Shown: piece after piece, positions 4,780 to 64,000 of the stretch
Layout: every line of letters begins with the position of its first letter
How positions within the stretch are numbered: position 1 is the stretch's first letter
Made by a program: the position numbers and the translations under genes
From: Anthoceros angustus
Lineage: Eukaryota; Plantae; Anthocerotophyta
Length of the DNA: 64,000 nucleotides
Reading direction: 5' to 3'
NCBI GenBank assembly: GCA_010909165.1
Contig: VJWM01000202.1
Span: 248,001-312,000 of the forward strand
Notes under the pieces: generated by a model
What the model was told of the DNA's origin: nothing
Databases searched by the model: none
Seen by the model: the letters and a program-made list of their open reading frames with translations, nothing else

Positions 4780-7018
4780 CTAGAATACAGCATCCAGTCG
4801 AAGATCTGTGGCACAACCGTAAATGACCCTATTATTTCCCCTAATGCACCCACTATCAATTTGCCTCCACTCCGGTGTTTGTTTGGAAAGATCGCAAATC
4901 ACAACAGGAGTGCTGAAATTCTCATAAATGTAAATCAAATCCGAACAACCCACCCCTTGAATCTTTCTTAGAGGCATTCGCGCAAAAAACTTCTCGGGCA
5001 TGCGTGCTATCTCCACCCATGCACTGCCTCCACTGTTTAACTCCCAGATTGCGAGCCCGTCCTCAACGACGCGTCTCTCATTGTCTACAAACCCTATCAT
5101 CAGAAGTCTTCCTTTCGACTCCACCAGAAAGGGAGAAATTCCACTGTCAGGATCAAGGGCCGGAGGACACGGGGCCTGTACATGACTCCAGGTTCCACTA
5201 CTCATATTGTAAGCTAAAAGCTTGAACCTCCACAACATGTAGTAGAGGTTCCCATTGCAGAAAGCTGTTCTGACGTAGGGGCCCCATCGGATGTGACCAC
5301 CGTCGTCTGTGATCTTATCACAGGTTTTTCTCCAGCAGTTTGCTCTAGAGTGGAAAATCTCAGTGGAGTACACCTTTACAGGGCATGGTTGCAATAGATG
5401 GTGTCAGGTAGCTTAGATTACCAGCCTCCTGACGGCCAATGGCAGGATAAGCCTTCCAGCCCACCCTCTAAACGACTACTCGTAACCTGAGATGGAAAGA
5501 GTGCACAACGGAATTGGGGAGTTGCTTTGCAAGATGTGCAGATTTCGTCGTGTGCAGTCACCATACCTTATGCATCACAGAGGGCTTGGAGAGACCGCCA
5601 GCCACAACAACGATGAAATCTCCCCTTTGAGCTGAGCTTTCGCAGTCTTGAAACACTGCCACCACTGGCTGCACTCTCTTCTCATTGAGAGGAGGAAACT
5701 TTCTCCATGCCCTGGTCACCGGATTGCACAAGCACAGCGCAATGTACAGGCGGGCAAAGTACTCGAAGAAGAGCAGCCCACCCACTGCGCCAACAATGTG
5801 CAACGGTCTCTTGACATGCTCGTGGGGAATGAAGCCAAGCGGGATCTTGTACCACCTGTCCAGCCTTGGATTGTAGGCGTGGGAGTCATCCTCAATCCAG
5901 CTGTCCCAGGTGAAGAGCCAGGGTTTCTCTGGGGGTATGGCAGAGTAGACAGCCAGAAATCCGCGGTCTTCCATGAGAGTACGGTTCCACTTTCTGCAAA
6001 CTGCACGGCAACTCACAAGGCATGGAAGGGGAAGGCAGGCCAGAATCCGTTCCACCAGATCGTACGGCAAAGTGCTCCACAGAGACTGCTCCAAATCACA
6101 GAGTCTCAGCCCTGCCCCTCCAGCGAGTCTCACGGACGGGTCTTCGTCAGGCGGTTGCAACTCCTCAGGTCCAAGGGGCTTGGCCACCGAACCCAATGTC
6201 GCCCCTGGCTCAAACGCCACATTCTCCTGCATCGGCCTCATCTCTATGGTTTCCCCAGGCACCCTCTCCCCCACGGCCTGTGCACCATGCTCCACAAGCT
6301 TCTCCGAGGGAATCTTCTCCCTCGACTCCTCACTGGATCCAACTCCTGCTGATCTGGTCGCCACAGAAAGAGCGTCATCCGCCACCGCAGGGCTTGAAGG
6401 CCCCACCAGCGAGTCCCTGATCTTCTTCACCTTCTCCAGGGTAACCGACATGGCCTCCCTGGCCCGCGAAGGCTGCTCCCTCCAAGCCGTGCCATGTCTC
6501 ACATGCAAACTAGAGAATTTGCGCTCGGACGTGATCTCCTTCAAGGAATAGTAACTCGATCCCTGGCTACCCTCCGCTGCCGGAGAATGGCCCCTTCCGG
6601 AGGAGGAAACCTCATCCACCATCAGCTTCATCGAGCTTCTTGAAACCTCTTTCTTGGAAGAGCTTCCATCTCCACAAGCAGCCACAACTTCATCCAACAG
6701 TTCCTCCAATACAGTTCTTGTGGTAGACAGATCCCCCATAATCCTTGCGTAGTTAGCCTCAAGCTCAAGTTGCTGCACCTCGGACCGCACCTGCTGCAGA
6801 AGGGAAGTTTCCCTTTGGAGGTCCTCCTTAGGATTGGAAGCAGAAGAGTAGGAACACACGGACGTGCTGCAGCTCTCCTCCTCCGAGCTCGAGCGTCCCC
6901 CGCCTCTGGTCTGGAAATCATCCTCGCATTTCACAAACGAATCAGGCGGCACGTAGGATGGAATGTCGGGATCTCGCAGCCCCATAGTATAGACGAGTCT
7001 TCTGCGGGGCCGCCTCAT
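4780..7018 (-). CDS. F-box/kelch-type protein, 2 exons (5567-7018, 4780-5373), about 681 aa with a long low-complexity N-terminal extension
   Basis: F-box LPYDLVERILACLPLPCLVSCRAVCRKWN is followed by plant FBX-kelch motifs (GAVGGLL, LCNPVTRAWRKFPP, LVESKGRLLMIG). A GT..AG phase-0 intron at 5374-5566 joins ...SVMHK|VYSTEIF... in frame. First in-frame ATG is at 7018; an upstream exon is possible. Confidence 0.9.
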
Positions 7019-7783
7019 ATTCTGTCGCTGACCATCCAGAACCACCCAACAAGAACAACATGTAGCCTGCACTACACAAGTCCGGAGGTCTGCAGCAGCA
7101 GGTTGAAGGATAGAACGTGCATTTGTTGATCCACACCATGCCACCCAGGCTCACATCACCCACATGGGTGGAGCTGATCCAAACCACCAAAGGGTTGCGA
7201 GGATGCATTGCCGGCCCAAGCGACAAAGACAAAGACGCACCTCTTCACCAGGCCGTCTTCAGCTGACACTCAGGACATCCAAAACTAATAACAAACAAGG
7301 ACACAACATACCGCTACGCAACACAAGGTCATGCTAAACCGCACACACCTAGGGCCCGCAATTGCTCACGACGCCAGAAATCATGGCCTCCGTTCTCAAC
7401 TCGGGAAGCCTTCCCCACGAGCAGAAAAACCGAGAATGTGGTAAGAAAGGGGCATTTGACTACTTCCTTCCTTTTTACTCCCCATCTGTTCTACGTGACT
7501 CGCTACATTACAAGGTGGCCGGGACAGGACAGCAGAGGCCTGGCCCGGCGCTGAATCACAGCTCGCGCCTTTGCTTCTGGAGGCTCGTGATCCTGCCTCC
7601 AGCTGCGGTGGGTGACACCACAACCCGGAACTGAGGAGCCTCCGCAGATCTTTACTACAGCGGTGCGAGATTTTCGCAGGGCGGAACAGTCCTCTCACCT
7701 TAGAATGGAGTGCCATTGATCTGGAATTCAGGAGGGCTGGGTTGTCCAGACGGTGGGAGTGGTGATCTGCTCCCGGAGACACG

Positions 7784-43574: not shown

Positions 43575-44889
43575 CTTGAATGAGATCACTCCGTAGCCTA
43601 GTGTTGGATACAAAGCAAACCTATAGTTAAGCAATGCTAGTTAGGGTTAAGTGAAGCGTTATTAAGTCAAGTATAAAAGGCACATCTCAAACACATTTTT
43701 GTATTCATTCTTTATTTGATGAAAGTTTATCTTGTACGCTTATCAGCTTACAAAACGATCATGGTATCAGAGCCATGCTTGATCTACCATATAGATCCCT
43801 AGAAAATGCCGAGATCGGGTAATCGCCGAAGGGAGGCAACTGGAGAGTGCGTGGCGATTTGAGGGCTCTTGCCCGTAAAATCCTACCTACCTACCGTGGA
43901 CACATTGTCTGGACCTCAGACGGGGATTACCCGCGTCTCGCTTAGAGATCTTGCCAATAGACATTCTGTCCAAACCGCTCTAGACCTAAATTTCCCTATC
44001 CAACCGTGACAGACGCTTTGTTTAGGCACGTCATCGAGAGCCCAAAATCCAGATTTGTTCTGAAGACCGGAAACTCGAGTTGAGACAATTCTTCTGCCTC
44101 AACTGCACAACAGGACAAGAGATCAATCTCAAGGCAAAGCAGATCAAGGTTGCCCTTCAATCACGGTGGCCACGAGAGTTGAGAGAACACTTACCTGCTG
44201 CTATCACAGAATCTTTGAACACGATGTTCAAGACATCGAGGACAAAGATTCGGCAGAGGATTAACAATTTGAACACGTAATTGAAGATTGACATCGCCGC
44301 GAGATGAGATGATGAACCAATTGAATTTCAAAGTGTCGTTTGAGTGCATCCTTGGCCCCAGAGCGCCAAGAATCGCCTTTGAAGCTTCCGCAGAAAGTTG
44401 AAACGCGAAGGAGAATCGAACGCTGCTTATTGCCAACAAAGGTGTGAAGGATTTCGCCGCCACTCCAAGGCACCGCCTCGACTCTTCAAGCCTTCCGCCT
44501 CTACACCGTGTGCCTTGCCACATGAGAAGGACACACCGCGATTAGGGAACAAGATTCTACGTTTGGTTTTCACTAGTTAGGGTTTCTAACCCCATTTCGC
44601 ATTGGCTTCTACTTTTCGTTGATTAACCCTTGCAGATGCCGGAGGCGAGACGAGGGCGGAGCAGCCCACATGATCATGTTCTGACCCAAACCAAGACCGC
44701 CGCGCCTCCCTCGCATCGCCTAGGTTAGTAACGAGTAAGGCCCCACAAATTCTCTGCCTGCATAAGAGTTTGAAGGCCATCAACTAACTCTGATCATAAT
44801 CACGAGTGTGTGTTAGCCTGTCTCACTCTTATCAGTAGCTCTAGTCTCTAGAAAGAAAGCATCCTTCCCAGCTTTACCTTGCACTTGGG

Positions 44890-46549
44890 ATGGGTACTCG
44901 GGCACCGAATCCCACATATACCTCAGAATTAAAGGAGAAGGATCGGTTTAATGGGACCAAGTTTCCTGTCTGGAAGGTCCGCATGAAAACCACCTTGATT
45001 GGCAGAGGGGTATGGGAAGTGGTAGATGGGACATATGCAAAACCTGATCCCAATGCCACCCCGCCTCGCAATATAGAAAAATGGAATCGGTTAAATTCCA
45101 TAGCGCAAGATTAGTCCATGGTCTAGATGAAGTCCTCGACGATGTGGAGTACCACACCGGGAAGGAATTTGGGATCAACTCGTAGCCACATATGATGTCC
45201 AAAACATGCATGCTTACAACATGCGATGGAATTCTACTCACTTCGCTTATGCGTGAAGGTGAGAGGTTGTTCCTCATGTCACAAAATTTAGGCAGCGAGC
45301 CCAAATGAAGGCTTTTGGATCCACCATCGAAGTTGAGGTAGCGACCGCTTGTTAACCTCCCCGCCACCCTCATATCAAACCTTTATCAAGAGCTTCAATG
45401 CCCCTATCCGGACTCGTAGTGTGCTCCTCCCTCCATCACGAGAGGAGATCATCGGTGCCTGCTTCGTGAAGAACAGTATTAACTCGCAGAGGACATAAAA
45501 CCAAAGGTGACAAAGTCCTTGTCAGAAATTTCGGACCAGCACTGGAAGGCAAGTGGAGGTCGAGCAGATTCATCTTCCGTTCGCCTCCCCGCTGCTTAAC
45601 CGGGAATTGCAATCGGTGGTGTGGCTATATTGGGCTCGTGAGTGCTGGAAGAAGGCCGGCGACCCACGTAAAGTCTCAAAGCCGACACGCTGCGCCAAGG
45701 AAAAGGGAGAAAGCCCCAAAGGCAGAAAGATTCTTACCGCTTGCCTCGCAAGCTCTTTGCATGATGTCGGATGTTGGTACTGACTCGGTGCTACCACACA
45801 CATCCGCAATGACAAGCACCTTTTTCAACTTTAACATTATGTAACATGAAAGACAAGGTGTTGCTTGGGGATGAGCGGAGTGATACTAACTGCGAGTTGA
45901 GGGTCATGGCACTGCATTTCCTCCTTGATGATGGTTCGACCCTCGCACCCATGGTGTACTTTTGTCCCGAGATATGGCCAAGAACCTGTTGTCGTTGAGC
46001 AAACTCATGCAGCCCTGCCTATATGAGATGCGGGTTGATAGTGAGGGCTGCTTCTACAAGGTGGGCCATCCAACAATCAGGTCTTCAAGGGAGTACCGGA
46101 GCATGATCTGTACAGGCTTGCTGTATAGTGTGTTCGGCCCCTGCCTATTCTACAGAGCAGCTCTTTTGAATTCCCGGTGGCATCTTTGTGGCATGCGCTT
46201 TAGGGCATGCTAATCGGCACAAGCTCATAGACATGTCCAAGCTTTCCGCCACCGAAACCCTTGCCATCCTTTAAGGATCTTCCGTTATGCAGTCTTGTAT
46301 TCTCAAGCTGGAGCTCCTGCTCAAGAATGCACATAGAGCAACAGTCTGTGGAGTTAGTCCATGCAGATATCTCTGGAAAAATTCACCAGCCCTCACTGGG
46401 TGGTGCCCTCTATTATCTAACAATTACAGATGACTTCAGCAGATATTCGTGGACTTATCTTATGCATCTTAAGAGTGACACTCTAGGCTATTTCCGGGAA
46501 TGGTTACCTGTGGTGCAAAGGCAGTCCGGCTGTCCCTCTCAAGGTACTT
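44890..46549 (+). pseudogene. Copia gag - pre-integrase - integrase N-terminal part (frameshifted)
   Basis: DRFNGTKFPVWKVRMKTTLIGRGVWEVVDG, zinc-knuckle region, KNLLSLSKL, ELVHADISG..GGALYYLTITDDFSRYSWTYLM..VQRQSGCPLKVL. Confidence 0.9.
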
Positions 46550-47439
46550 CATCACAAAACTGGATAACCATGTTTTTCATGTGGAAATCATATGGCGCCA
46601 CGGCCCATGCAGTCGGCCATGGAAAAAACCATATGAAAATAATATCCTCAATGGGTAAGTATTTTTATTTTTATTTCCTACTTGTTCTATATTATTTATG
46701 TTTGAGTCCTACAAAGAGCTCATATATTACTCATGAAAGGACAATATACTCATGATATAAATTTCATTCAGTGTCTATGTAGTTTAATTATCTCAATATA
46801 TAGGTGCACTTATATGAAATCTCTTATGGATCTATGAAAAATAAAATAAAAAATATTTACGTCATTAAATTTTATGTCCTTCATACCAATCTTATATGGA
46901 TATTTATGAACTAAATTTATTTTTTTAAATGATTACATATTTTTATTATATGAAAATATCTAATAATATAAAAATATGATAAGTACATCCAATAAAATTC
47001 ATATGTATTTTAATACCATGTATCATGTGTAAAATAATATAAAGAACATGTAGGTAGGGTTCATGCAGTCGGCCATGAAAAAAGGGCATGAAAATCATAT
47101 CCCTATCAGTTTTTGATTTATGTCATTCCTTGTAAAGTCTTTGTACCCATTTGGTTTTGAGTCCTACAAAAGAACTTGTAAAATACTCATGAAGGTGCAA
47201 GTGTCCTTCTATTTTGTGTGTCATGCTAAATGTATATACTTTCTTTATCTCAATATATATGTACATTTATATGGAAATCTGTATGGATTTATGTGAAAAT
47301 TGATATAAGCATCATACACGAATTGATATGATTTATATATGCCTTTCACAATTCCTTTATGAATATCTAGTACCTGAGTTTTAAATTTCTTGTATATATA
47401 CATATATGCATATATATATATATACATATATATATATCG

Positions 47440-50400
47440 TATATATACATAATAATTAATCTTTAGTACAAATATTATGATTAAAAATACACTATATTTA
47501 TAACTTTAAAATAATTATAATCATTCAACAATTACAACATCTAGCTTTTAAGCGAATCCAAGCTAGGGCTTCTTGTGCACGATTCTCCGGCTCGGGACGA
47601 GCTATCGGGACCATGATCCCTCCCCATCAATACGAACTCACAGGTCAAATTTTTCTTGCAGGTGCGCCTAACATATACATTCAACCCATACACTACAAAG
47701 TTGAAGAGCCCCTGCAATCAGAGATGTAAGAGGCTATCATACGGGACCGGAGACTGAAAATCACACCAAGGCAGGGTGCTCTTACCATGAGACCTGCTGT
47801 GCCAATGTGAAGGCAATACAGCCAGAACAGCCGTTGATGTGGTTTCACAGAATCATGAATTCGGTTGATAGTTCCATTGAACAGTATAGCTCCCCATAGA
47901 GGTACACAGAATGTGATAGACCGTAGCACCTGGTACCAGAGTTTTGATAGTTGGCATCCATGGTTGCACAGTGGTCCTCCCACACTGCAATTGAAGAAAA
48001 CCACAAAGTTTCCGTGACATTTCCTGTAGTTGTCTCTGTCCTGACCCAACACCAAGCACCAGCCGGTCCATACCCATTTGAGCTGCAAATGCTAATAAAT
48101 TGACCACTGCACTAGGAAAGATATGAAGATCACCACTAGCCTGTCCAAACTTGAAATTGCAGTCCTTCTTGGATCACCAATGCATTAGGCCACTCCCAAA
48201 TGCATCTTCCAGTGCCTGAACGGCACACAAGAGAACCTTTAGATGGTCCAGAAAACTATACAGTATGGCAGATTGTCGCAGTAACATATGTCAGTCAGTG
48301 CAGGGATGACTACACCTAGCTGACATGCCGAGAATGAACAGGAGCGTACCAACTGAAGTTCAAACCGTGGGTTTCAGGACTTCCATGTCAGCTAGATTGT
48401 CTGCAAGGTAACGCCATTCTCCATTCACAAGATGGGCAATTAATGCAAACATGGCAGCCTGATGCTTCTTCTCCATGCGACAAAGCAGGCTAAAGTCCAA
48501 GTACCTGTACCAGCTAGCTAACAGTCGATGAAAATCCAGTGTGACAAGATTCAGCACGCCTCATTTTGCCACCTACCATCGGCACGAGATGTCGCTTTGC
48601 TTCATTCTGATCCTCAACACTAGCCTGCTGACCACTCGACGATGCCCTCTGCAATTAGTTGCATGTCCCCAGGTCGTATATATACATAATAATTAATCTT
48701 TAGTACAAATATGATTAAAAATACACTATATTTATAACTTTAAAATAATTATAATCATTCAACAATTACAACATCTAGCTTTTAAGCGAATCAAGCTAGG
48801 GCTTCTTGTGCACGATTCTCCTGGCTCGGGACGAGCTACTCGGGACCATGATCCCTCCCCATCAATACGAACTCACAGGTCAAATTTTTCTTGCAGGGTG
48901 CGCCTAACATATACATTCAACCCATACACTACAAAGTTGAAGAGCCCCTGCAATCAGACGGATGTAAGAGGCTATCATACGGGACCGGAGACTGAAAATC
49001 ACACCAAGGCAGGGTGCTCTTACCATGAGACCACAGCTGTGCCAATGTGAAGGCAATACAGCCAGAACAGCCGTTGATGTGGTTTCACAGAATCATGAAT
49101 TCGGTTGATAGTTCCATTGAACAGTATAGCTCCCCATAGAGAGGTACACAGAATGTGATAGACCGTAGCACCTGGTACCAGAGTTTTGATAGTTGGCATC
49201 CATGGTTGCACAGTGGTCCTCCCACACTGCAATTGAAGAAAACCACAAAGTTTCCATACTTCCTGTAGTTGTCTCTGTCCTGACCCAACACCAAGCACCA
49301 GCCGGTCCATACCCATTTGAGCTGCAAATGCTAATAAATTGACCACTGCACTGGAAAGATATGAAGATCACCACTAGCCTGTCCAAACTTGAAATTCGGC
49401 AGTCCTTCTTGGATCACCAATGCATTAGGGCCACTCCAAATGCATCTTCCAGTGCCTGAACGTGCACAAGAGAACCTTTAGATGGTCCAGAAAACTATAC
49501 AGTATGGCAGATTGTCGCAGTAACATATGTCAGTCAGTGCAGGGATGACTACACCTAGCTGACATGCCGAGAATGAACAGGAGCGTACCAACTGAAGTTC
49601 AAACCGGTGGGTTTCAGGACTTCCATGTCAGCTAGATTGTCTGCAAGGTAACGCCATTCTCCATTCACAAGATGGGCAATTAATGCAAACATGGCAGCCT
49701 GATGCTTCTTCCCGTGACAAAGCAGGCTAAAGTCCAAGTACCTGTACCAGCTAGCTAACAGTCGATGAAATCCAGTCGATGACAAGATTCAGCACGCTCT
49801 CACTTTGCCACCTACCATCGGCACGAGATGTCGCTTTGCTTCATTCTGATCCTCAACACTAGCCTGCTGACCACTCGACGAATGCCCCTCTGCAATTAGT
49901 TGCATGTCCCCAGGTCGTATATATACATAATAATTAATCTTTAGTACAAATATTATGATTAAAAATACACTATATTTATAACTTTAAAATAATTATAATC
50001 ATTCAACAATTACAACATCTAGCTTTTAAGCGAATCCAAGCTAAGGGCTTCTTGTGCACGATTCTCCCGGCTCGGGACGAGCTACTCAGGACCATGATCC
50101 CTCCCCATCAATACGAACTCACAGGTCAAATTTTTCTTGCAGGGTGCGCCTAACATATACATTCAACCCATACACTACAAAGTTGAAGGCCCCTGCAATC
50201 AGACGGATGTAAGAGGCTATCATACGGGACCGGAGACTGAAAATCACACCAAGGCAGGGTGCTCTTACCATGAGACCTGCTGTGCCAATGTGAAGGCAAT
50301 ACAGCCAGAACAGCCGTTGATGTGGTTTCACAGAATCATGAATTCGGTTGATAGTTCCATTGAACAGTATAGCTCCCCATAGAGAGGTACACAGAATGTG

Positions 50401-51164
50401 ATAGACCGTAGCACCTGGTACCAGAGTTTTGATAGTTGGCATCCATGGTTGCACAGTGGTCCTCCCACACTGCAATTGAAGAAAACCACAAAGTTTCCAC
50501 ATTTCCTGTAGTTGTCTCTGTCCTGACCCAACACCAAGCACCAGCCGGTCCATACCCATTTGAGCTGCAAATGCTAATAAATTGACCACTGCACTGGGAA
50601 AGATATGAAGATCACCACTAGCCTGTCCAAACTTGAAATTCAGCAGTCCTTCTTGGATCACCATGCATTAGGCCACTCCCAAATGCATCTTCCAGTGCCT
50701 GAACGTGCACACAAAAGAACCTTTAGATGGTCCAGAAAACTATACAGTATGGCAGATTGTCGCAGTAACATATGTCAGTCAGTGCAGGGATGACTACACC
50801 TAGCTGACATGCCGAGAATGAACAGGAGCGTACCAACTGAAGTTCAAACCGGTGGGTTTCAGGACTTCCATGTCAGCTAGATTGTCTGCAAGGTAACGCC
50901 ATTCTCCACTCACAAGATGGGCAATTAATGCAAACATGGCAGCCTGATGCTTTCTCCATGTGACAAAGCAGGCTGAAAGTCCAAGTACCTGTACCAGCTA
51001 GCTAACAGTCGATGAAATCCAGTGTATTATAAGATTCAGCACGCTCTCATTTTGCCACCTACCATCGGCACGAGATGTCGCTTTGCTTCATTCTGATCCT
51101 CAACACTAGCCTGCTGACCACTCGACGAATGCCCCTCTGCAATTAGTTGCATGTCCCCAGGTCG
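47440..51164. repeat. Tandem triplication of a ~1.24-kb unit (47440-48676, 48677-49917, 49918-51164)
   Basis: The junction CCCCAGGTCG|TATATA occurs twice; the TCG microhomology is shared with ATATCG|TATAT and GGTCG|ATGACC. Confidence 0.95.
50119..50760 (-). pseudogene. GCR1: Captured GCR1 (plant 7TM receptor) fragment, internally deleted; further copies at approx 47640-48280 and 48870-49510
   Basis: GAWCWVR, VLRSITFCVPLWGAILFNG|TINRIHDSVKPHQRLFWLYCLHIGTAGLM, an intron, then GAFNFVVYGLNVYVRRTLQEK. These match the GCR1 motifs TFYAPLWGAILYNG, GTINRIHD and GLFNSIAYG. Confidence 0.85.
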
Positions 51165-51490
51165 ATGACCTTGCACCCATTCCATAGTCAGGACCCTCTT
51201 GGTAGTCGTAGGAGGCAGGGTACGAGGAACCACGATGTACTTCAAGTGAGCACGTGCTTCCTACAAGGAAAAACCACCAATTGTGATCCAATCAACCAGA
51301 GACCAAGCAATAAAGCTGCCAGAAGGACGGCTACATGTAGCTCTGGAGCAACTGCTGCTTGGACAATCCAAAAACTTCACGAGAAAACAGTTCGATCCAT
51401 ACTCAAAATTCTTCCACATTTGTGGCCTCGACGTTGTAGTCAAGCTCCCATGCAGACCCCGTCCAAGCTCATCAGCCAAACCTAACCCTG
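50800..51490 (-). pseudogene. ABC1K: Captured ABC1/UbiB atypical kinase fragment with introns; partial copies at approx 48320-48676 and 49555-49917
   Basis: ADELGRGL.GELDYNVEATN, YIVVPRT..KRVLTMEWVQG, EAKRHLVPMV, YLDFSLLCRMEKKHQAAMFALIAHLVNGEW. Confidence 0.85.
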
Positions 51491-52129
51491 CCGCAACAAA
51501 ACCACCGCCAATTCAACAAACAGGACGAACACCAAAATGATCTTACAAAACAGAACAACAAAGCCGCACGCATCATCCTTTCAGAATGAAGCCAGTCTCG
51601 GCAAGTAAACTCCGTCGGACAGCACCAGCCGAAAGCGCTCCTGCGAGGTGGAATTGCTCCCGATCGCCTTGATGTCAATCACCGGTGCCGCCATCGCCGA
51701 TCTTGCCGCACCTGGCCGAGATTTCTCCCTATGCTGCTACCCTTGCTGGAGTCCGACCCGGCGGCGCTCACCGCAGCCGAGCAATATGTGTTCATACACT
51801 GAAATCTGCAATCATACAGTGTACATGGCAACGCAGCCAGCATGCCCCCCCTTCCCTCCCGCAATTCCCAAACCCCATCCCAAAGCCTACCCGGGAATCC
51901 AAATCCGTAGCAGTGAAACATCTATCACAGGCAAGTACCTTGTGATTACATTTGAAACGACCACACAACAACCAGCATGGCACCTAGTGCCAGCAGTGGA
52001 CTTGCCATCTAAACCTCCAAAAGAACATTTAGGAAGCCTTCCAGGACTGTAAAAGAACATTTAGGAAGCCTTCCAGGACTGTAAAAGAATACACGTTCAA
52101 TCTGGCAGTTTATCATGTTTTACGATTCT

Positions 52130-53470
52130 ACACGAATAGTGATCTTCGTTAGACTCGGCATCCAAGCGATGATCTTTTCTTCCAGGGCATCCATATCCTC
52201 ACGATGTTCTTCCATTTGTGTTGGTATGAGAGTCTTCCCCTCCATCGCCAGGTCCAACTACAAGGAAACAACAATAACATCAGCTACTACCAGTTATCAT
52301 TTAAAACAACAGGGAGGAAAGTTATCGCATAGAACTGAACAACATGGAGGCACCTTACCACATAAAACAGAAACTTTGCTTGATCCATGTTCATTTCTAT
52401 GACATCGTCGGCGGAGAAGTGCATGGCTGCTCTTAAGGCAGCAATAACTGCATCTGAGCCCCAGGGGTCCAACACACCTGTATCAGCATCCAAAACTTCC
52501 CTCCAACTATCATCTGCTCTAAGATCAGCCAGTTTTTCTCTCCAATACTGCAAATTTTCGTCCTTAGCAGGTTTCGGACATTCCAGCTGCTGATAGAAGG
52601 TGGTCCTCAAAAGCTTTGTGAAAAAAGACCGCTTGCTCCTAGTGGCGTCAAGGACTTTCCTCCTTAACGCTCCTCTCCAGTTCTTATCAAACTCTGATTG
52701 GTCGCTCTCGGTTACTCCAAACGCAAGAATTAATGCTTGCTTGAGGCAAGCCTCACTTGGATAAAAAGTCTTCTCCAACATGATGTCAGTCAGAATGTTG
52801 GAAAGTACCTCAGCAAAAACCTTGTTAGTCATATACTCCGGCTTCGCTAGAGGGGAAGCCTTTAATGCTAATTCAGCAGTTCGTTGTAAAGCTTGCATCA
52901 TCGAATTCTGCTTCTTCAGCTCATCCCGCAACATTGCAATTTCAATTCGGTCAACATTTGTGGTAATTACCTCCTTCTCCTTTGCCTTGTGATGCTTCCG
53001 ACTCTCAGATCTATAACTACCATTCTCCAACGTCTCCGCATCCTTTCCGTATCTCCGAGAGAAGGAAGTTGGCCGATATGCCACCTGCTGCTTCCTTCCT
53101 CCATAAAAGACTTCTCCAGTGAAATCGTTCACTATTCTATTCGACTCTTTCAAAGGAAAGAGATCTTGCACATGCTTTGTTTGTGAAGGAGGACTCGGAT
53201 CCTTCCGAGAAGATCCAATCGGCTGAGTAAGGGGATCAGGCCGATCTTCGGCTTGCTGCTTCCTTCCTACAGGACCGGCTTCTTTTGCAGAATTCGATGA
53301 CCGTCCAACTTGTTGTTCCCTTGTTCGATTCGCATCTTTCGAGGGAGAGAGATGAACGGTCTCCGAAGCTTGCTCCTCTCCCCTGCTCGAGTCCTTCATT
53401 TTCTTGCTTGGTGGACCAGACGCAACAGGTGGCAATCCAGGCTTCCTTCGACTTCCTCTCTGCATATCTG
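52130..53470 (-). CDS. Plavaka accessory protein (low-complexity N-terminus, coiled coil, helical C-terminal domain), spliced
   Basis: Long open frame 52287-53534 with an acceptor near 53470 and donor FYV|gtaag near 52350, plus a short terminal exon at approx 52130-52240. Same strand as the transposase, inside the TIRs. Confidence 0.65.
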
Positions 53471-53899
53471 TGAAGGCGGAAAAGGACATAAGATCATTAC
53501 AAGATGTAGCACGAGGACATTTACAGGAAATCAAATGTGAGACATACCGGAAAATTTATAACGCAACAAGGCGCAACACACCGGCGTCAGCTGGCGGATC
53601 AATTCGCACGAAATGATGTTCAGCCGGCTGCACGCCGCTGAACACCAACACGCTGTAGCAGATGTCCACACGCCGTAGCAGACTGACTGCAGCTGTCCAG
53701 TCGATTGGTTAGAAACTGCGCTCAAACGCTAAGGCAGAATGGACAGGGAAACAGAAAATTGTCACGGGAAAACTTCATTAAGGTAGGGTAATGCAATTTC
53801 ATGCACCCCTGCCCGAACTACCCCTGCCCCCGGCGTTGATCCTTAACAAAATAGATGTGCAAAACGAATCCACAAAGCACAAGAAAGCATACCCATGCT

Positions 53900-54290
53900 C
53901 CTTTTGAGAGATAACAACTTCCATTCACGAGAATGACTGAGAAGGTTTGCAAACCGACGCAGTCCCACATGCCTGCCTGAGCATAAAAGGTTCCCATGAG
54001 CACAAAGGCGGAAGGGTGTTGTGGTTCCAGAGCCCTTGCGCAATTGAACATACACCTTCCCAGCTGCACATTGTTATGTTTCCAGCAAGCATTGCTGGAA
54101 GCAGGTGCTTTTCTAAAGCAAGCAGGTGCTTTTCTAAAGCATTTCACCTTAACAATGACATCTCCGAATTGTTATACACAGCTGAGACACTTTCATGATG
54201 AATGCAAGTCAGGCCCACCAATTAACCATTGTCATGGGAACTTACAACAAACCAATCCCAATGCAGACCAAGGGTGGTAACCTAGATCAA
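53900..54290 (-). pseudogene. PPR (PLS-E class) C-terminal fragment
   Basis: ACWKHNNVQLGRCMFNCARALEPQHPSAFVLMGTFYAQAGMWD is an E-motif. Confidence 0.8.
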
Positions 54291-54301
54291 ACCTGTCCAC
54301 A

Positions 54302-57300
54302 TCAAAATTTATACTTGTTTATGAACCACCTATTTCTAGCATTCCAATTTGGCACGAGGTGATGTGCCCTAAGAATGCTGGCTGTCTCCACTACTAAATA
54401 TCCAGTGCATCCACGAGTAGCATCAGCCCATGCTAATTCCTTACACTTTGACAATCTACTTAATGATGAAGCTGGTAACTCCTTGTACAGTTTCACAAAA
54501 GCTAAATCAAGTTTAGAGGCTGATCTATCTTCATCTTCCACATCCAGTTGAAATAGTAGACGTAACTGCCCATACCAGGTTTGCTCTAGTTGAGCTTCTC
54601 CCTCCATTTGGATACTGACATCAGAATACCATGGCCTTCTATGGAAATTGTACGTTGCACGGAGGTACATTGGCCAATCCCCTAATCTATCTCCAGGGCC
54701 AGCAGCAACAGCAAGAGCTCCCTTGGTCATCAACGCTCTCCCCTACAAGTACATGTTGTCACCAAAAGGATCACTTATTATACCAGCTTGTCCTCGCAAC
54801 AACAAAAATATTGCAAACTGCTGAATGTAGTAAACTATGAACAAACCTGTTGACGGGTTAAATGCCAGTCATTGAGATAAATCTGAACTTGCGACACCAA
54901 ATGTTGTTGAAGCTCAGGTTGGGCTTCAAATAAGCGGGCAACCTGCACAGGCAAGTTGACAGTTGTACTTGCTAATAGCCATTTCCATTTGATGCGTACA
55001 CTATGCCCACAAAGCTTTCTTTTCCCCGTTCGCACTGCCTACAAACATTTAAACAAAAAAAGGTCAAAACTTGGGGAAGAGTCTGCAATACGCATGTACA
55101 GAAAGCTAACTAACCGGAAGCTCAAAGCCATGCCAAGATGTTTCAGCCTCAACTTAAACTAGTACCTCATCCAAAGGGGTGACCCTCTCAACTTTAGGCT
55201 CAAAGCCTTCCATGTTTTCTGCCTCGCTTCTTAATGCCTCCAACCGTTTATGATGTTGCACAATCTGATCAGTAAATCTTCGCCTATTGCTCGCGCGATA
55301 TGGCATCTTCATGAGCATAATATGCATGTGTTCATACATATTTGCACTGTACTCCCATGGTAGCCCGGAGCGTCGAATGCAATCTGAAAAGTGTGTCATT
55401 GCATGCACTTTGACAGTATCAAAGTTTGATGCTTGAAAACCGCCCAAAATACTCTTCATGCTGGTGACAGCACTGTGACATTGACATGGCAACAGAACTA
55501 TGTGATATACTCTAGGCTACCAAACTGTCATCAAAAGCCTACTAGGTAGCACAAAATTACTAATGTGATTTTGATTCAGACCTAAAAATGACATCATTGC
55601 AACACAATACAAATGCTGAACAAATATAAAGCTGCAAACTTGTACCTAGACATCTGATCCTCCATTTGTTGTAGCGTCTCTTCATTGTGCACTCCGCTTC
55701 GACAAGCTAGCTTGTACCAATCCAAAAATTTGACAATTACCTGGATAACACCAGGAGAAAAAACTCCAGGCATGCAAAGTACCAACACTTGCATGACTGC
55801 TCTGTGTTCGAAGGCAGCAAAATTTGCATTGGAGATGAAGTAACCATGGCTGTTGTTCCCTGGGATACGAAATGCTGAATATCGATGTTGAGTCTGAAGG
55901 ACCCGCAATCGTTGATCCAGTACCTCAAGAGGCTTTTGCGTTAAGCACAAGCCTGCCGCAGCAACTCCTCGCAAAGCTGCAACCAGCATTTTAGCAAGTC
56001 CCAAGTCTGATTCATGGAGAATCTCAACTTGAATTGCTCGAAAGCAATTACCGAGCTCAGTGTCACCTCCATTAAATCCTAGTAGGGCACACTGAAGGAC
56101 AAGAAGTTCAGGAACCATCACAACTTGATGTAAGAAAAACACTAAACCTATCATTACTCCAGATTTGGTACCTTAACAGGATGAACTGAAGATTCTGAGG
56201 AGAGTCGATTCGCAGCTGCTACCTGCCCAACATCAATCATCTCGGCAAGCTGATTCTGCAGAACTATCATACTTGCTTCGGTCCGCCATTCATGCTTCAA
56301 ATCGACTCTACTCAAAAGATTTCGGGGACACAAACAAACGCTGCAAGGGAAAGCACATTTATTTGTGTCGAATGTGCAACTGACCTGCAAAAACATCACT
56401 CCTTCAATCATATATACAACATGAAAAAGAAAGTATTGCAGGCATGAAAACTGTGATCACATCAGTACTAGTAGCCAGTCTTGAGGATAATAGAATTTAC
56501 TTTGCATCCTTCAGGATGATCTGCTATGTAAGAATAGAGCATAGGGAAAACCCACTGGTGACAACCAAATGGATCCTTCAAGTGCAATCCTTTAAAACTC
56601 GCCTCCTTCAGTGGTTGCAGTATCAGCTCCAAACATTGCTGAAAAATCTCCAGTTTCTTCAATCTTGAATTGGAAGCATGGAGAACCACAGGATCATTAC
56701 TACCAATTGTTGGCAAAATCGCTAGAAGCGCATGTCCATGCTCCAAAGACCTCGTCGCACATGCAATATTGCCCAATGACATCACAAGCGGATATCCACT
56801 AGTTCTTTGATCATGTGAGAGGCTTGTAGCATCTGAGTACAAAATGATAGGTGCTATTACAGCCCCTTCACAACCTACATGTTCCTGCACCCAGACGAAA
56901 ATAAACGAATTTAATATGAGCATGCAGCATACTCATAGACTTCATAATGATCTCAAAGTACCTCCATTTTTCGCCACCACAAACCGGTTTGCGCAGTTGT
57001 GTACTCTTCAGTTCCGGAAACCTCTGGTTTCAACACAAATTCCCTCCTATTCTTTCGTGCCGAAAAGAGCTTTCCAAGAACACCAACTGGATCTCTGTAC
57101 CTTAGTTTTAGGTCACTTTCTCCTGGACAAACTAGAACTTCCTTCCACTCGTATCCATCTTCTGTTTTAACTTGGGATGTGCGGATCAACTCTTTCTCGT
57201 AAGCCTTAAACTCTTGAAAACTCCTATACCTCAATTCTTCCAATCTAAACGAAGGGTGAAATAGCATAGCAAACAACGAGGTAATATCCTTTTGTGATAG

Positions 57301-57768
57301 CCCTGCAGAGTTCCTGCAATGCCGAATAAAGTGAGCAAGATGAAAGCTAGAATCAAAATCCTTGGTCTGCCCCATCCATATGTCTTCGTTGCCAGTGCCT
57401 CCACAGCTGGTACTACCACTCCTATTGCCATCTGACTCACCTCCAGAGCTAGTACTACCACTCCTATTGCCATCTGACTCACCTCCAGAGCTCGTATTAC
57501 GATGCCTACCACCATCCGACTCGCCTGTAGAGTTGCTAGTACCACCACTTCTATTGCCATCTGATTCTTGAGTATCAACCTGCATCTGATCATCTTCTGC
57601 ACCTTGCCAATCATCCAAGCTTGCCCCTCGAGGAGAAGCTGGGATAGGACTGGTCCTTTGAGCAGCTTTTTGTAAACGTCGACACCTTGAATTTCTGCTC
57701 TGATGGCTGCCTAGACTTCCTCGATGGACAAATCCTGTTGCCCCACAATACTCACAATCAAATGCCAT
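54302..57768 (-). CDS. Plavaka transposase, about 7 exons
   Basis: N-terminal CEYCG..HQ zinc finger, LRYRDPVG..TGLWW, PIILYSDATS..GYPLVMSLGNI, YIADHPEGCK, FPCSVC, ILHESDLG, KVHAMTHFSDCIRRSG..YEHMH, and C-terminal WYGQLRLLF..LAFVKLY..SILRAHHLVP. Exon ends largely GT-AG. Confidence 0.9.
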
Positions 57769-58044
57769 CTTGGATGGGCCAAGATGGATAAGCCTTAACC
57801 TTGGATGAGTGCAGGATCGGAAATGGCCCTCGTTACTGCTGTTACGGTGAGCACGTTATGTCAGCAGGGGAAGCTTTTTGAGGTCGTTCAAGACCTAGAA
57901 TCTTGTCAGCAGGGGAAGCTTTTTGAGGTCATTCAAGACCTAGAATCTCTGGCGCAGACAGAGTCTGCCATTTCCTAGTCTCTAATGTACACTGTGCTGA
58001 AACTGTGTAGCAGCTAAGAAGGATTTGGTTGTGGGGCATCGAGT

Positions 58045-59220
58045 TCATGATATCACTGCCAAACTTGGGCAGGAGTCGAGTGCCTTCTCGGGAACCATAT
58101 CTTGCGCATGAATGCATGCGAAGGTAGGCTGCAGGAGACCATGGACGTGTTCACCAGGGTGGGCGAACCAAACGTCTTCATGTGGTTTTCCGTAATCTCT
58201 GCACATGCCAAGCACGGAAAACCGAAGGAGGCCATACAACTCTACCACGACAAGTGTATGTAGGTCCGAGGTGAAGGTGAATGGTCACGTCTTTGTAGCT
58301 GCCCTTCAGGCTTGCGCACTTGCCGCCGACTTGGAATCTGGTAGACGATGGTCTCCACATTCCGCCTCCTCCCGCACTTTCCATTGTGAAACCCAACCGT
58401 GAGCTATGCCGATGCAAGCGACGCCAAGCCCAGCAACAGGAGGATCGTGAAGCAAGTCCATCTCACCTTGCTCCTGCGCAGCAAAACCAGGAGTGAGAAT
58501 CGTGGATCACTCCAAGCCCCACTAGAAGAAGAGAGACACAGTAGAGAGCTTCGCAAAACTTACGAGACGGATGCAGTCGCGTGCAGCTAGGGCAGGAACG
58601 TCCGCGCAGGACACAAGCCCAGGGCACTTACTTTCGCCAGACGCTTTGATCGTGTCAATCACGTCGAATCCCAGAGCAAGTTTTGTTGGGAAGAGCGTCC
58701 TTCTCACTGTCAGCAGTATCCAGGAGGACGGAGGCATCGCACCCCTACACGAAATTGTGTGCGGCAGGCGAGACTGATTAGGATTACTGTACACGAGCAT
58801 CATGCCTACAATCTGCTCGCAATCCAGACTGATTCGCCAGCGGCTCACCTGGACGAAGCAGTGGTGGAAGTGGTGCCGAATCAAAGAAGCACAGATCGTT
58901 CAGTCGGCCAGGTACGCCTTCTTCACCCCCTGCCAGCAAGGGCTTGGACATGAGGCGCTTGTTCTGCATGGACAAATGGAGCAGGAGGGCCTCAATTTGA
59001 CAAACAATTTTACTTTTGCTTGCCTTCTCAATGCAACCACTGGTGCCATATAGAGGGGCAGGCAGGTGCACTCAGAGACTGTCAAAAGAGGACTGCTGGA
59101 AAATGTCGTGTTGGGCAACTGTCTGGTGGACATGTATGCCTTTTACTTGCCTTCTGAAGGCCTGTGCAACCACTGGTGCGATACAGAGGGGCAGGAACCC
59201 CTACGATGAGGTGAGCGGGA
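58045..59220 (+). pseudogene. PPR repeat fragments (approx 58045-58400 and 58890-59220) split by a peroxidase fragment
   Basis: NVFMWFSVISAHAKHGKPKEAIQLY, VNGHVFVAALQACA, QGLGHEALVLHGQMEQEG..FTFACLL, GRQVHSE..NVVLGNCLVDMYA. Confidence 0.8.
58564..58890 (-). pseudogene. Class III peroxidase fragment (end of exon 1, intron 1, exon 2)
   Basis: ASLIRHHFHHCFVQ|gtgag (58848) ... tag|GCDASVLLD..EKDALPN..GFDVIDTIKASGESKCPGLVSCADVPALAARD|gtaag (58563), with the canonical PRX intron positions. Confidence 0.9.
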
Positions 59221-60456
59221 GCCCCTTGGTAAAAATCCTTGTACGCACACCAATCTGTTAGGTGCCCTTGAACCCTCCTGCCGGAGTTCGAGAAGCGAGG
59301 AGTCATGGAGCTGAGTTTCCGGGAAGTGAGCGCGCTGCCTACAAGGAAGCTTTATAACATTACTTATCGAATACCATATAAATTCAATATAATAAAATAT
59401 AATACCTACATGTAAATCACGTCAGATTCCTATTATTTAAGTATAAAATGATAAAATAATTATTATTATATAATTTTAATAACATCATAAATATAATATT
59501 TTTATACATATATTTATCGATATCTTATAATATTCACGTTAAACCGTGGCAAACACTCATTGCCTAGCCATAAAAACATTAGAAGATCGATACATCCTCA
59601 ATATCTATATTACATCTAGAGAAATTTGATGATCATATATATATATAGAATATCAATAATATTTATAAGATATCTAAAAAATATAAATATAAATATAAAT
59701 ACTATAAATATTAATAAACAGTATACTATATACATATAAAATATTATAGGACAACATGTGTAACTTCCATATGAAAAATACTCTATATTAAAAATATAAT
59801 CATACGTATTTTATCTTGATAATATGGATAAAATAATTGTATGAAAAAAATTATGATTACCTTATAACAAACACGTCTCAAGAAGAATGTTATTTCATGT
59901 AAGAACCTTAAAACATCCATAGAGGTATGAACATATGGTAAATACTTGGATTAAAAAGAAAAATTTTATTAACCCTATATCAGAAAAATTATCATGTTAG
60001 TATGAACTATATGCATATACAAGCCATGTGAATTTTGATATCTTAATCTAAGAGCAAAACTTATACATCAAAATATATGCGATGTATACTTTTACACATA
60101 TATAATATTCAATATACTAATATTCAGTTACTCATTGTTACTTGTGACATGCATATGGACTCCATATAAAATGTTACTATATGTAAACTACATGATACCA
60201 TCACATAATATGATATCAGACTCATATAAAACACATCATGACTTAAGAAGTGTATTTATGCATGCAATTCATATTATCGCATACAAATGCCATATCCTAT
60301 AAATATAGAGTCATTATAAAATAATCTCACATTAGAACTATAGGAAAAGTATATTATAATTATAAACTCAAATAATATGGAGATTGTATGTTTTTAATAT
60401 ACTGTGGATTCCATATGGTCACGGTATGAAAAACGTGGCCCTTCAATTTTGTGATG

Positions 60457-62760
60457 TTCGCACGGATAATGGTACTGAGTTTGTGAACACTGCTTTCGAC
60501 GCATTTCTCCAGGAGCATGGAATCCAGCCACCGATCGTGCCCTACACCCAACATGAGTTGGCGTAAAAATCGGACTTTGCTCTCAATGACTCAGATGCTC
60601 TTGTGGGCCTAGCTTACCTCGGGACTTCGGCGAGGCCACATCGTCACCGCCACCTATATCCTCAGCAGTGCTTACCTGTCACTGGCAAGACTCCTTTTGA
60701 AGTCTTGGCGTAAGCCTAGTCTCCTTCATCTTCGGCGTTTTCGGTTCCGAGGCCTATGCTTATATCCCTGCCGAGAAGTGGAAGAAATTGGACAAGGGGG
60801 CTTTCCTCTTTCTGGTACATTAAGCTTGACCAAAACATAAGTTATATGATGCTCGCTCTCGATTACCCTTGCGTAGTGTTACTTTTATCAGGCCGTCCCA
60901 ACTGTTGATTCATCCCCTCTTGGCGCTCTTGCGCTCGGAAGAGTTGGGCCGGTGGGCGACGACTCGATGTCTGTGGTATCCCCAAGATGATGAGCCTCTG
61001 CTTTGTACTGTTGTGCCACCCATGGCTCCTACCGCTCGGAGGATCTCGCATCGAGGGAAGGCAGTCAATCGAGGATGATAGCCATAATAATTCGACAATG
61101 TTGTCCCAGTGAACATCTGGATGATATTGACTTGGCCAAATCCGACTCCTCCGAACTTGCGCAACTGAGCATGTGGCGAACCGAACACGAACTTCGCGTT
61201 CCACTAGGCACGGACCTCCTCACGAGGGATGGAAGGAGCCTCCATATGCCTCTATTGGTGGAGGACTTTTGGAGCTATAGTCGACATTTTACGGCTCTTG
61301 AGCCTCGCTCCTACAAAGAGGCCATCTCATGCAGCGGTCTCAAGTGGAAGGTGGCCGCCGAGGGCGAATATCAATCTCTTATTAAAAAGCGAGACTTGGG
61401 TCCTCACGGATGCACCACAAGGGAAAGCCGATATCTTGTAAGTGGGTGTTCAAGCTAAAATTAAATGCAAAGGGGAAATTGCTAGATACAAAGCTAGACT
61501 TGTAGCAAGAGGCTTCACACAGGTTGAAGGCTTGGATTACCGAGACCTTCTACTGTAGTGCGAACACGATCCATTAGGATCATACTTGCTTTACTGAGCA
61601 CTTGGATCTACAAATGGGCGTGTCTGACCTTCCTCTCACGACACTTGATGAAGAGATTTATATGATGCGACTGAGGATACCGGGACAAGCGTTATCTGGC
61701 AAAGTCCTAAAACTCACTGAAATGCATATATGGGCTAAAACAAAGTGGAAGGTATGGTATATTACCATCCACATTTACTTACTTGAGATTGGTTTTGTTC
61801 AAAGCACGGTGACTCAGCGTATATCGCCTTAGTGAGTGTTGATTTTGTTCTTGGCCTTATGCGTGGGCGGCGTAATTCTATAACAAGCAGTCAAGGCATT
61901 AGCAGAGTTAAGGATATCTTGAGGACCCGATATGACATGAAGGATATCGGGGGCTCGGATACTGAATCTGAATACTTAGGAACGGACATGAAGGTGCAGT
62001 AATAATCCATCAACACAAGTACATAGGAGAAATCCTGCGTAAGTTTAAAATGGATCAAGCCAGCTGCGTCCACTCCATATCGGCGAGAATGAAGCTTACG
62101 ATGGCGATGTCGCGATCGAGAGGAGATCAAAGACATATACGCTATTCCCTATAGGCCTGTAGGCGATCTCATATTTATTTACAAAGCTGGACGGGCGGAT
62201 ATCCAATATCTTGGTTACCGTCACAGTTTACGGCGACAGGAAAAGCCCTTTGGGTTGCGATCAAGCGTGTGTTCGAGATATTTGAAAGAAAACATATGCG
62301 GGCTTATTCTCTGAGCGATGGGTAAAATGCTTACTGGAAGGATTCACGGACGTGGGCATCCGATAGTGATTCGAAGAAAAGTCTCTCAACCTCGCTTCTT
62401 CCTCTCTTGATCAAGCTGGTCTTGTAAAAGCAAACATCCATAGCACTCTCCTCCCAGGAGGCGGTACAAATCACTTAGATGCTTCCAAGGAGGCGGTGGG
62501 GCCTTGACTTCCTCAAGGACCTTGACCGAGCGGATGGCACCTACAAAGTTACATTGTGACAATATGCATTGTGGCAAATCCTAGATTTCATGCACGTACT
62601 AAACATATTGAAATTGACATCACTCGTCGGGGATGTGGTCGAGAGGTGGTTAAAGTGGACTACGTCCATCTGAGAGGACAACGTGCGAGACATCCTCAAA
62701 GGGCTTGCCAAAACACAAGCACTATACATCTTGAGGGTCTTGGGTTGGATTACTACGCCG
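60457..62760 (+). pseudogene. Copia integrase core/C-terminus - RT - RNase H (frameshifted)
   Basis: RTDNGTEFVN..FLQEHGI..VPYT, EPRSYKEA, KARLVARGFTQVEG, LDEEIYM, and ANPRFHARTKHIEID. Confidence 0.92.
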
Positions 62761-64000
62761 CTTGAGGATGGGTCATAGGACTTACTCGGTGGGAGGCGGG
62801 GCCCACAAGTTCCCTAGGTGTGGTGTGGAGTGTCAGTTCACTGCACACCACGTGCATGCACCACAAGCTCATCGGAGGAGTCTAGGATACACGTTAGGTC
62901 ACTTACATAGCGTTGCACACTCCACAGGGAGGCCAGGATGGATGAAGCTAACCTTAGGATTAAATCATCCGTCTTGGCTCTTCAAAGCGGGTTTCACATC
63001 TTGGCTCATCGGTGACAGCAGGATCGGTGTCGGCGGTAACTCGACTCACAATCTGTTCGTGGCAGCCTCAACTTAGGCTGCAGGGCAGGGCTGCATTCGA
63101 AGCGTGGCGTCTTTGGGGTCCTTCGCCACGGAAGCTCCAGCGGGTATGTCCCAGGCGCTCAGGAAGCTATTTAATCTCGACAAGTTCCTCCGGTGAATTG
63201 CGACCCATTCTTGCGCGGTCTGCGCTAGCCCTTGTTCCTGCTGGCGTGGCGTCTCCTTCTCCTTGCCACGTTCTCACGCACATGGCCTCGTCCAGTGTCT
63301 CTTCCGGCTGCGAGTCCTCATGGCGTTGAGGCGGCAGTGCGTGGTGGGCGTGCTCGTGGTGGGAGGCCAAGGAAGATGCCGCAGCAAGCATGTAGTGGAA
63401 TGCCCCGTGCAGAGGTTGGGTTTCGCACAGCGACGAGGCGGTGACAAGGAGCGCTAAGGGTGATCAGGGCAATGTGAACCTCCATTATGCATACATCACT
63501 TACCTAATAGGTGCTTTAGAGGAGTGTTGGATACAAAGCAAACCTATAGTTAAGCAATGCTAGTTAGGGTTAAGTGAGCGTTATTAAGTCAAGTATAAAG
63601 GCACATCTCAAACACATTTTGTATTCATTCTTTATTTGATGAAAGTTTATCTTGTCGCTTGACTTACAAAGCGATCACCTAGTGGGAAGGTAAGTGTGGA
63701 TGCGTGGAGGGCGTCAAGGTAGTCAGAAACGGGTGGAGCGGACGTTGTGGCCGAGGCGCTCGGCGAGCACGTGAGGCGGCAGGCTCAACGTGAGAGCTCC
63801 GGCCAGCCAGTGCTCCAGTGACTTGCCGGATCGTGAGGAGGAAGCACAAAGTCGGTGGCGTGGGGGTGGTTCTCAACCCCGCAGCCGTGACGATGGCAAC
63901 AGATCGACCAAACAGCGTACTCTCTTTGGAGGTAAGAAGGAGAGGGACGGAAACCTTCGTGGAGGATATGTCGTGTCTCGAGGCGAACTTCAACGGAGAA

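Follow-up and report, generated by a model that had tools for sequence, protein, structure and literature searches.

Fragments of an ABC1-family kinase gene and of GCR1 in a threefold tandem array within a Plavaka-type transposon of Anthoceros angustus

The window analyzed here, a 64,000-nt stretch of the Anthoceros angustus genome (assembly GCA_010909165.1, contig VJWM01000202.1, positions 248,001 to 312,000 of the forward strand), holds a whole Plavaka-type (PlavakaB-like) element of 13.9 kb on the minus strand. The element spans 46550..60456 (all coordinates are positions in the window) and was recognized by its CATCACAAAA...TTTTGTGATG termini, a TT duplication and a match to the Pfam family Plavaka. 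Inside it lie intron-containing pieces of two unrelated host genes, an ABC1-family kinase gene (ABC1K) and the receptor gene GCR1, which are fused to each other and repeated in tandem.

The Plavaka-type element and its insertion site

The sequence CATCACAAAA is matched only twice in the window, at 46550(+) and at 60456(-). The ends of the element form an imperfect terminal inverted repeat (TIR) of 46 nt, identical at 34 of the 46 positions, and the termini read 5'-CATCA..TGATG-3'. Directly outside them a 2-bp TT target site duplication (TSD) is found at 46548-46549 and 60457-60458.

The insertion site can be reconstructed from the flanks. The left flank corresponds to positions 4-64 of the rve profile and the right flank to positions 71-94, i.e., to consecutive parts of one Copia integrase core, and the sequence reads through as ..PLKVL|RTDNGTEF.. 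when a single TT is kept, with a 1-nt frame slip about 15 nt upstream of the insertion site. As the flanks are adjacent parts of one rve domain, the 13.9-kb element was inserted into a Copia element, and the cargo described below must have come with the Plavaka element or entered it later. The long terminal repeats (LTRs) of the Copia host lie at 43600-43761 and 63523-63677. Their alignment of 162 columns contains 7 gap columns but only 2 mismatches and is thus indel-heavy, like that of the tandem units of the cargo; this pattern suggests that the assembly is made from unpolished long reads.

The transposase gene region covers 54305..57855 on the minus strand and consists of several open reading frame (ORF) pieces. 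The Pfam family Plavaka (PF18759) is matched at 56471-56923(-) with E=8.6e-26 and 91 bits against a cut-off of 26.3 (profile positions 105-235), and a weak match to profile positions 41-99 is located at the C-terminal end of the ORF at 56956-57855. Introns, indel noise or both break the transposase reading frame into six pieces or more. Within its N-terminal ORF a 42-nt tandem repeat of four copies, encoding repeated ESDGNRSGSTSSGG, is present at 57398-57568(-). At the other end of the element about 0.9 kb of its own AT-rich sequence (46550..47436, minus strand) separates the cargo from the near terminus and carries the subterminal motif CATGGCCGACTGCATG at 46606 and 47062.

PlavakaB elements are marked by 5'-CATCA..TGATG-3' termini and a target duplication of 2-3 bp (PMC12730594). 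By its transposase, its termini and its TSD alike, the present element would be assigned to the PlavakaB type.

A threefold array of fused ABC1K and GCR1 fragments

Self-BLAST and a three-way alignment show that 47437..51164 (minus strand) is made of three head-to-tail copies of a chimeric unit of ~1.24 kb, namely unit A (47437-48676), unit B (48674-49917) and unit C (49915-51164). In self-BLAST, 47437-49917 is 97.2% identical to 48674-51164 over 2510 columns and 47437-48676 is 97.4% identical to 49915-51164; across the three units the mean column identity is 98%. TRF misses the array, as the longest period it covers is 500. The trinucleotide CGA is common to every unit boundary and the junctions repeat exactly: it stands at the left edge (GGTCAT-CGA-CCTGG), recurs at each junction and is present again at the right edge, preceding the (TA)n tract. 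The array consists of direct repeats only and contains no hairpin.

Read on the minus strand, each unit starts with the ABC1K part and continues with the GCR1 part, and all recognizable coding sequence of the array lies on this strand. The unit begins inside an ABC1K exon, at RPGDM, so that only the upstream copy has kept an additional 5' part of ABC1K (51165-51487). Each unit is closed by the start of a GCR1 intron running into an AT-rich tail, ahead of which a short palindrome CTAGCTT..AAGCTAG, ending in CTAG, can be read from the alignment. Beyond unit A the AT-rich tail runs on into the (TA)n tract at 47393-47451. Some differences are shared in a nested manner among the units, e.g., a CT insertion at alignment columns 785-786 that is common to B and C. 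These two are the closest pair, with 32 differing columns, compared with 38 for A and C and 48 for A and B.

The ABC1K fragment extends from 51487 to ~50602, as judged from its relatives and from the gene structure in Riccia sorocarpa. Its single-copy 5' part, outside the repeat (51165..51487, minus strand; tblastn and Riccia gene structure), opens at an exon start (cag|G TTA GGT = LGL). There, 13 codons are missing ahead of ADELGRGL in comparison with Riccia, and the piece LGL|ADELGRGLHG.ELDYNVEATNVEEF at 51487-51403 contains a 1-nt frame slip in addition. It is followed by an intron of ~142 nt with a ttgtag acceptor (51402-51261), which is not present in Riccia, and then by the start of the EARAHLKYIVVPRTLPPTTTKRVLTMEWVQGH exon.

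This exon is the only piece of the fragment that scores in profile searches. It contains ..IVVPRTLPPTTTKRVLTMEWVQGHRPGDM.. and is matched by Pfam ABC1 at 51039-51260(-) with E=2.1e-6 and 27.5 bits against a cut-off of 22.9 (profile positions 125-163 of 244), and also by positions 215-252 of the UbiB profile TIGR01982. The remaining ABC1K ORF pieces gave no score in Pfam or NCBIfam, and a PDB sequence search with two of the ABC1K pieces returned chance matches only. ABC1K proteins obtained from a HMMER search (P0013, P0020, P0022 and P0032) served as tblastn queries, giving E=1e-19 for the Pfam-scoring exon and 1e-8 to 1e-9 for the next exon; the best full-length relative is the Riccia sorocarpa protein P0020. 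The top HMMER library matches P0012, P0016 and P0019 were dropped, being repeat proteins (CARDB, FG-GAP, AIR9) aligned on a low-complexity stretch, and P0021, a protein without a Pfam family, was discarded with them. The nearest relatives of the Pfam-scoring ABC1K exon, at ~55% identity, are ORFs of 110-157 amino acids on 1-2-kb Logan and JGI contigs (P0013, P0015 and P0017); they end at the same exon end (..LDDLV) as the exon in the window, probably because the ORF calls run into an intron.

The layout of the repeated ABC1K part is the same in all units and is given here for unit C (50602..51164, minus strand; Pfam ABC1, TIGR01982, tblastn and Riccia gene structure). The exon tail RPGDM..HLVPM (51164-51063) is followed by a 74-nt stretch, GTAGGT..ACAG (51062-50989), which contains a stop codon and lacks the HADPHPGN catalytic segment. 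The next exon, YLDFSLLC..HLVNGEWRYLADNLADMEVLKPTGLNFSW (50988-50834), resumes the kinase sequence and reads YLDFSLLC(R/H)MEKKHQAAMFALIAHLVNGEWRYLADNLADMEVLKPTGLNFSW. A retained intron (50833-50699) separates it from the exon piece ALEDAFGSGL..LNFKFGQASGDLHI (50698-~50602), which ends a few bases short of GCR1 sequence. The ABC1K intron after ..KPTGLNFSW occupies the position of the Riccia intron between residues 777 and 778. A complete ABC1 domain with the catalytic HxDxHPGN segment is found in none of the units; in all of them the segment is missing or degenerate and a stop codon is present.

The GCR1 part was identified by a 181-amino-acid ORF of unit C that matches plant GCR1 (Pfam Dicty_CAR/7tm_2), the best match being Marchantia paleacea with E=3e-11. 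In tblastn the M. paleacea protein (P0001) matches only the three units in the whole window, with E down to 8.8e-23, and the matched residues are 127-153, 154-172 joined directly to 226-255, and 254-278. The cargo was mapped on the nine exons of the M. paleacea gene. In unit C the GCR1 part occupies 50123..50601 (minus strand), with equivalents at ~47642-48119 in unit A and ~48877-49357 in unit B. Coming from ABC1K, the junction with the tail of GCR1 intron 3 (~50601-50589) is followed by the complete exon 4, ..GYGPAGAWCWVRTETTTG (50588-~50501), a short intron 4 (~50500-50415) and the 5' part of exon 5, comprising its first 19 codons, VLRSITFCVPLWGAILFNG (50414-50356). To this the 3' part of exon 7, its last 29 codons, TINRIHDSVKPHQRLFWLYCLHIGTAGLM (50355-50269), is fused directly. 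Intron 7, of 76 nt with GT..AG ends (50268-50193), and exon 8, GLFNFVVYGLNVYVRRTLQEKFDL (50192-50123), complete the coding part, and the start of intron 8 (GTGAGT...) leads into the AT-rich unit tail (49915..50122, minus strand), exon 9 being absent.

Thus, GCR1 exons 1-3, 6 and 9 are missing and the residues present are equivalent to 127-172 and 226-278 of the 310-amino-acid M. paleacea protein. Instead of a full seven-helix receptor ORF, a remnant without transmembrane helices (TM) 1-3, part of TM5-6 and the tail was found. The FNG|TINRIHD join is present in all three units, at 47873|47872, 49113|49112 and 50356|50355. Since both breakpoints lie inside exons (5 and 7), it reflects a genomic deletion or a template switch and not splicing. 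An exact-match scan of metagenome contigs found the FNG|TINRIHD junction in none of them. Introns 4, 7 and 8 are located at the positions of the corresponding introns of M. paleacea GCR1.

The initial annotation had described this array as lying inside the TIRs, and it is indeed enclosed by 46550-60456, with the 46-nt TIR, the TT at both ends and the split Copia integrase around it. The order and strand it gave, ABC1K upstream and GCR1 downstream on the strand of the element's own genes, agree with the minus-strand position of both fragments and of the Plavaka transposase. Its head-to-tail triplication is likewise seen in the self-BLAST matches, with the refinement that the unit starts inside an ABC1K exon, and the internal GCR1 deletion joining FNG to TINRIHD is the exon 5 to exon 7 fusion described above.

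Origin of the cargo

The best reading of the locus is a DNA-level capture of host gene pieces into a PlavakaB-type element, followed by a young tandem triplication, and we consider this course of events probable. The retained cargo introns have GT..AG ends and, because introns were retained, the host gene pieces must have been copied as DNA and not as cDNA. DNA-level capture had already been proposed in the initial annotation on account of the introns, and the match of the intron positions to those in M. paleacea GCR1 and, for one intron, in Riccia sorocarpa ABC1K bears this out. For this comparison the exons were aligned singly, by reference gene or by tblastn.

In such a scenario, the element inside the Copia integrase gene would have acquired genomic pieces of two unrelated host genes, namely the middle of an ABC1-family kinase gene and the middle-to-3' stretch of GCR1 that begins with the last bases of intron 3 and stops early in intron 8, the two being fused facing the same way. 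Several of the internal joins are found within exons, among them LGL|ADELG, FNG|TINRIHD and the one at which the kinase catalytic segment was lost. Such a mosaic may have been created by repeated template switching or microhomology-mediated repair during transposon gap repair (transduplication). Template-switch capture during repair has been proposed for Pack-MULE and Pack-CACTA elements (PMC6379663, PMC13317346). The 1.24-kb segment from inside the ABC1K exon to the start of the (TA)n tract would then have been duplicated in tandem, possibly by slippage or end-joining, a microhomology event to which the 3-nt CGA at the junction points, and growth to three copies could have occurred by unequal exchange. 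As the structural oddities are common to all three units, they are older than the triplication.

On its sequence, the cargo is best regarded as passenger DNA that can encode neither protein, because the kinase has lost its catalytic motif along with most of its sequence, and TM1-3, part of TM5-6 and the tail are missing from the receptor. Any effect via read-through transcripts or small RNAs is speculation.

Other host gene scraps are present in the element. At 51581..51694 (minus strand) an N-terminal scrap of RPA1 (replication protein A 70 kDa) was found (Pfam Rep-A_N E=1.4e-5, just below the gathering score). The short RPA1-type ORF has its own ATG and is separated from the ABC1K fragment downstream by ~90 nt; it may derive from a host gene or from an RPA gene of the Helitron type. 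A scrap of a PPR E motif at 53821-54171 (minus strand; Pfam PF20431 E=4.5e-4, below the gathering score) is placed directly 3' of the transposase C-terminal ORF (54305-54742), and a fragment of a class III peroxidase at 58525-58899 (minus strand; PF00141 E=7.8e-13, profile positions 15-93 of 237) lies upstream of the transposase gene. All five host scraps (ABC1K, GCR1, RPA1, peroxidase and PPR E motif) are on the transposase strand. Between the PPR and RPA1 scraps an uninterrupted ORF of 415 amino acids without a Pfam family is located (52287-53534, minus strand); in a word search for its relatives none of the 8000 word-sharing candidates reached E<=0.001. Far from the element, at 4783-7144(-), there is an apparent host gene with an F-box (E=1.5e-8) on a 528-amino-acid ORF, followed by a KIB1-4 beta-propeller piece (E=5e-6).

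Several observations weigh against a capture followed by triplication. The element and its cargo are described from this one copy, and a joint movement of the two is putative. Neither parental gene was found in the databases searched: the ABC1K exons are ~55% identical to their best matches and no closer database protein was obtained with HMMER or tblastn, and among ~120 GCR1 proteins retrieved with the M. paleacea protein as query none was closer to the GCR1 exons than 57-65% identity, with the exception of one match of 71% over 76 aligned residues. A nested carrier without TIRs, e.g., a Helitron, would escape an inverted-repeat search. Finally, the units differ by 23 indel events, just 5 of them in homopolymers, compared with roughly 7-10 isolated substitutions. 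Fine frame details and perhaps the copy number are uncertain owing to the noisy assembly.

Among the alternatives, the first is that one contiguous segment was captured at once, with ABC1K just upstream of GCR1 in the source, and that the 3' half of ABC1K and the 5' part of GCR1, together with the spacer between them, were lost through later deletions. The co-orientation of the fragments, with the upstream gene followed by the downstream gene, would be expected in this case, and the block has lost sequence internally at three or more further sites whose breakpoints lie within exons. However, the 4 kb that precede GCR1 in M. paleacea contain no ABC1K, and the 0.5 kb that follow the ABC1K gene in Riccia contain no GCR1, which is a weak test because of these small flanks. 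We consider a single captured segment unlikely.

The second possibility is that the RPA1-ABC1K-GCR1 block is another mobile element, such as a non-autonomous Helitron, or a ready-made mosaic of scraps, that landed in or recombined into the Plavaka element. Helitrons typically bear chains of gene fragments on the same strand and RPA-like sequence. The RPA1 N-terminal scrap at the head of the block and the per-unit palindrome, with its CTAG ahead of the AT-rich tail, would suit such an origin. Against it, the search for inverted repeats around the cargo revealed nothing convincing that brackets the block, no clear Helitron 5' end is seen upstream, and host scraps occur elsewhere in the element too, on either side of the transposase gene. 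A nested block of this kind appears improbable.

It is also conceivable that errors of a noisy long-read assembly have produced the threefold repeat, in full or in part, and that the real locus has one or two units. The units differ mainly by indels of 1-3 bp and by few isolated substitutions, and the Copia LTR pair is alike in this respect, with its 7 gap columns versus 2 mismatches. The indel-heavy differences would fit long-read consensus noise, their ratio being the reverse of natural divergence. Single-copy frameshifts should thus not be taken as decay, and the units may be nearly identical. On the other hand, individual long reads can cover an array of only 3.7 kb, the differences shared among the units are nested, and the CGA junctions are clean and exactly repeated. 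We hold an artefactual repeat to be rather implausible, and the capture would stand even then.

That the cargo is functional, as an expressed chimeric ABC1K-GCR1 exon array giving a new protein or as a source of small RNAs regulating the parental genes, is very improbable: it shares its strand with the transposase and the upstream 415-amino-acid ORF, which makes read-through conceivable, its splice sites are retained and a count by eye gives 67-84% protein identity between its exons and Marchantia GCR1, but in every unit the ABC1K piece has a stop codon and no catalytic motif, one common frame does not run from the ABC1K exons across the junction into the GCR1 exons, and direct repeats without a hairpin are all the array offers.

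Comparison with known systems and significance

Capture of DNA-level gene pieces by a PlavakaB-type element, as favored here, resembles what is known from the Pack-CACTA and other Pack-TYPE elements of Arabidopsis, rice and other plants (PMC6379663, PMC8903248, PMC13317346), in which chimeric, intron-containing fragments of unrelated host genes, captured at the DNA level, lie between TIRs. Pack-CACTA and the present element also belong to the same broad CMC (CACTA-Mirage-Chapaev) group of TIR transposons. However, Pack-TYPE elements are non-autonomous by definition, whereas the present element holds a Plavaka transposase gene (~54.3-57.9 kb), and CACTA elements have CACTA termini and a 3-bp TSD, in contrast to the CATCA termini and the 2-bp TSD found here. 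In further difference to Pack-CACTA, the present host is a seed-free land plant and the present cargo is triplicated in tandem. The label 'Pack-Plavaka', which the initial annotation had used, is therefore a loose one: it suits the host fragments between TIRs, but 'Pack-' normally stands for a non-autonomous element without a transposase gene, and here such a gene is present.

The fungal PlavakaB elements (PMC12730594) and the giant Plavaka elements of red algae (bioRxiv 10.1101/2025.02.11.637652) share PF18759, the CATCA..TGATG termini and a 2-3-bp TSD with the element described here, and they too are large and have acquired extra genes; in the red-algal elements these are the accessory genes PAG1-3 (bioRxiv 10.1101/2025.02.11.637652). 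The cargo described for PlavakaB and giant Plavaka consists of whole, apparently useful genes (a TET/JBP dioxygenase, a methylase-SET protein and a ParB-like oxygenase), whereas the present cargo consists of dead host scraps. Rice Pack-MULEs and maize Helitrons (reviewed in PMC13317346) are similar in carrying exon-intron mosaics of multiple genes, which are often co-oriented and can be transcribed as chimeras, but they belong to other superfamilies with other mechanisms, and no Mutator or Helitron features were found in the present element.

On the plant side, Plavaka has been reported only from algae and a moss and was stated to be lost in land plants (Spirogyra genome paper, PMC13519894), and neither Plavaka nor bryophytes appear in a review of plant gene capture from 2026 (PMC13317346). 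In the literature searched we found no report joining Plavaka with captured gene fragments. The remark in the initial annotation that gene capture is not described for Plavaka is consistent with this as far as fragments are concerned; capture of whole accessory genes by Plavaka is known, however. In itself the process is ordinary gene-fragment capture, and what may be new is the Plavaka lineage as the carrier.

A more far-reaching proposal, which we regard as a long shot, is that transposase-bearing Plavaka elements of this plant lineage are active exon shufflers that repeatedly take up sense-oriented host fragments and amplify them internally. If true, transduplication would be seen here for the first time in the Plavaka lineage and, among plants of bryophyte grade, in an apparently autonomous CMC element. 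The orientation bias of the five scraps would then indicate that capture is linked to transcription or that chimeric read-through transcripts are selected for.

The cargo looks dead, and as a single locus it appears to be of modest interest. With its clean ends and its reconstructable insertion site in the Copia integrase gene, the present copy is a good reference for annotating the family. Through the capture of gene fragments, transposons can bring exons into new combinations and give rise to small RNAs directed at host genes. In seed plants this process has been well described for MULEs, CACTA elements and Helitrons; the Plavaka case would add a further branch of the CMC group and a land plant without seeds.

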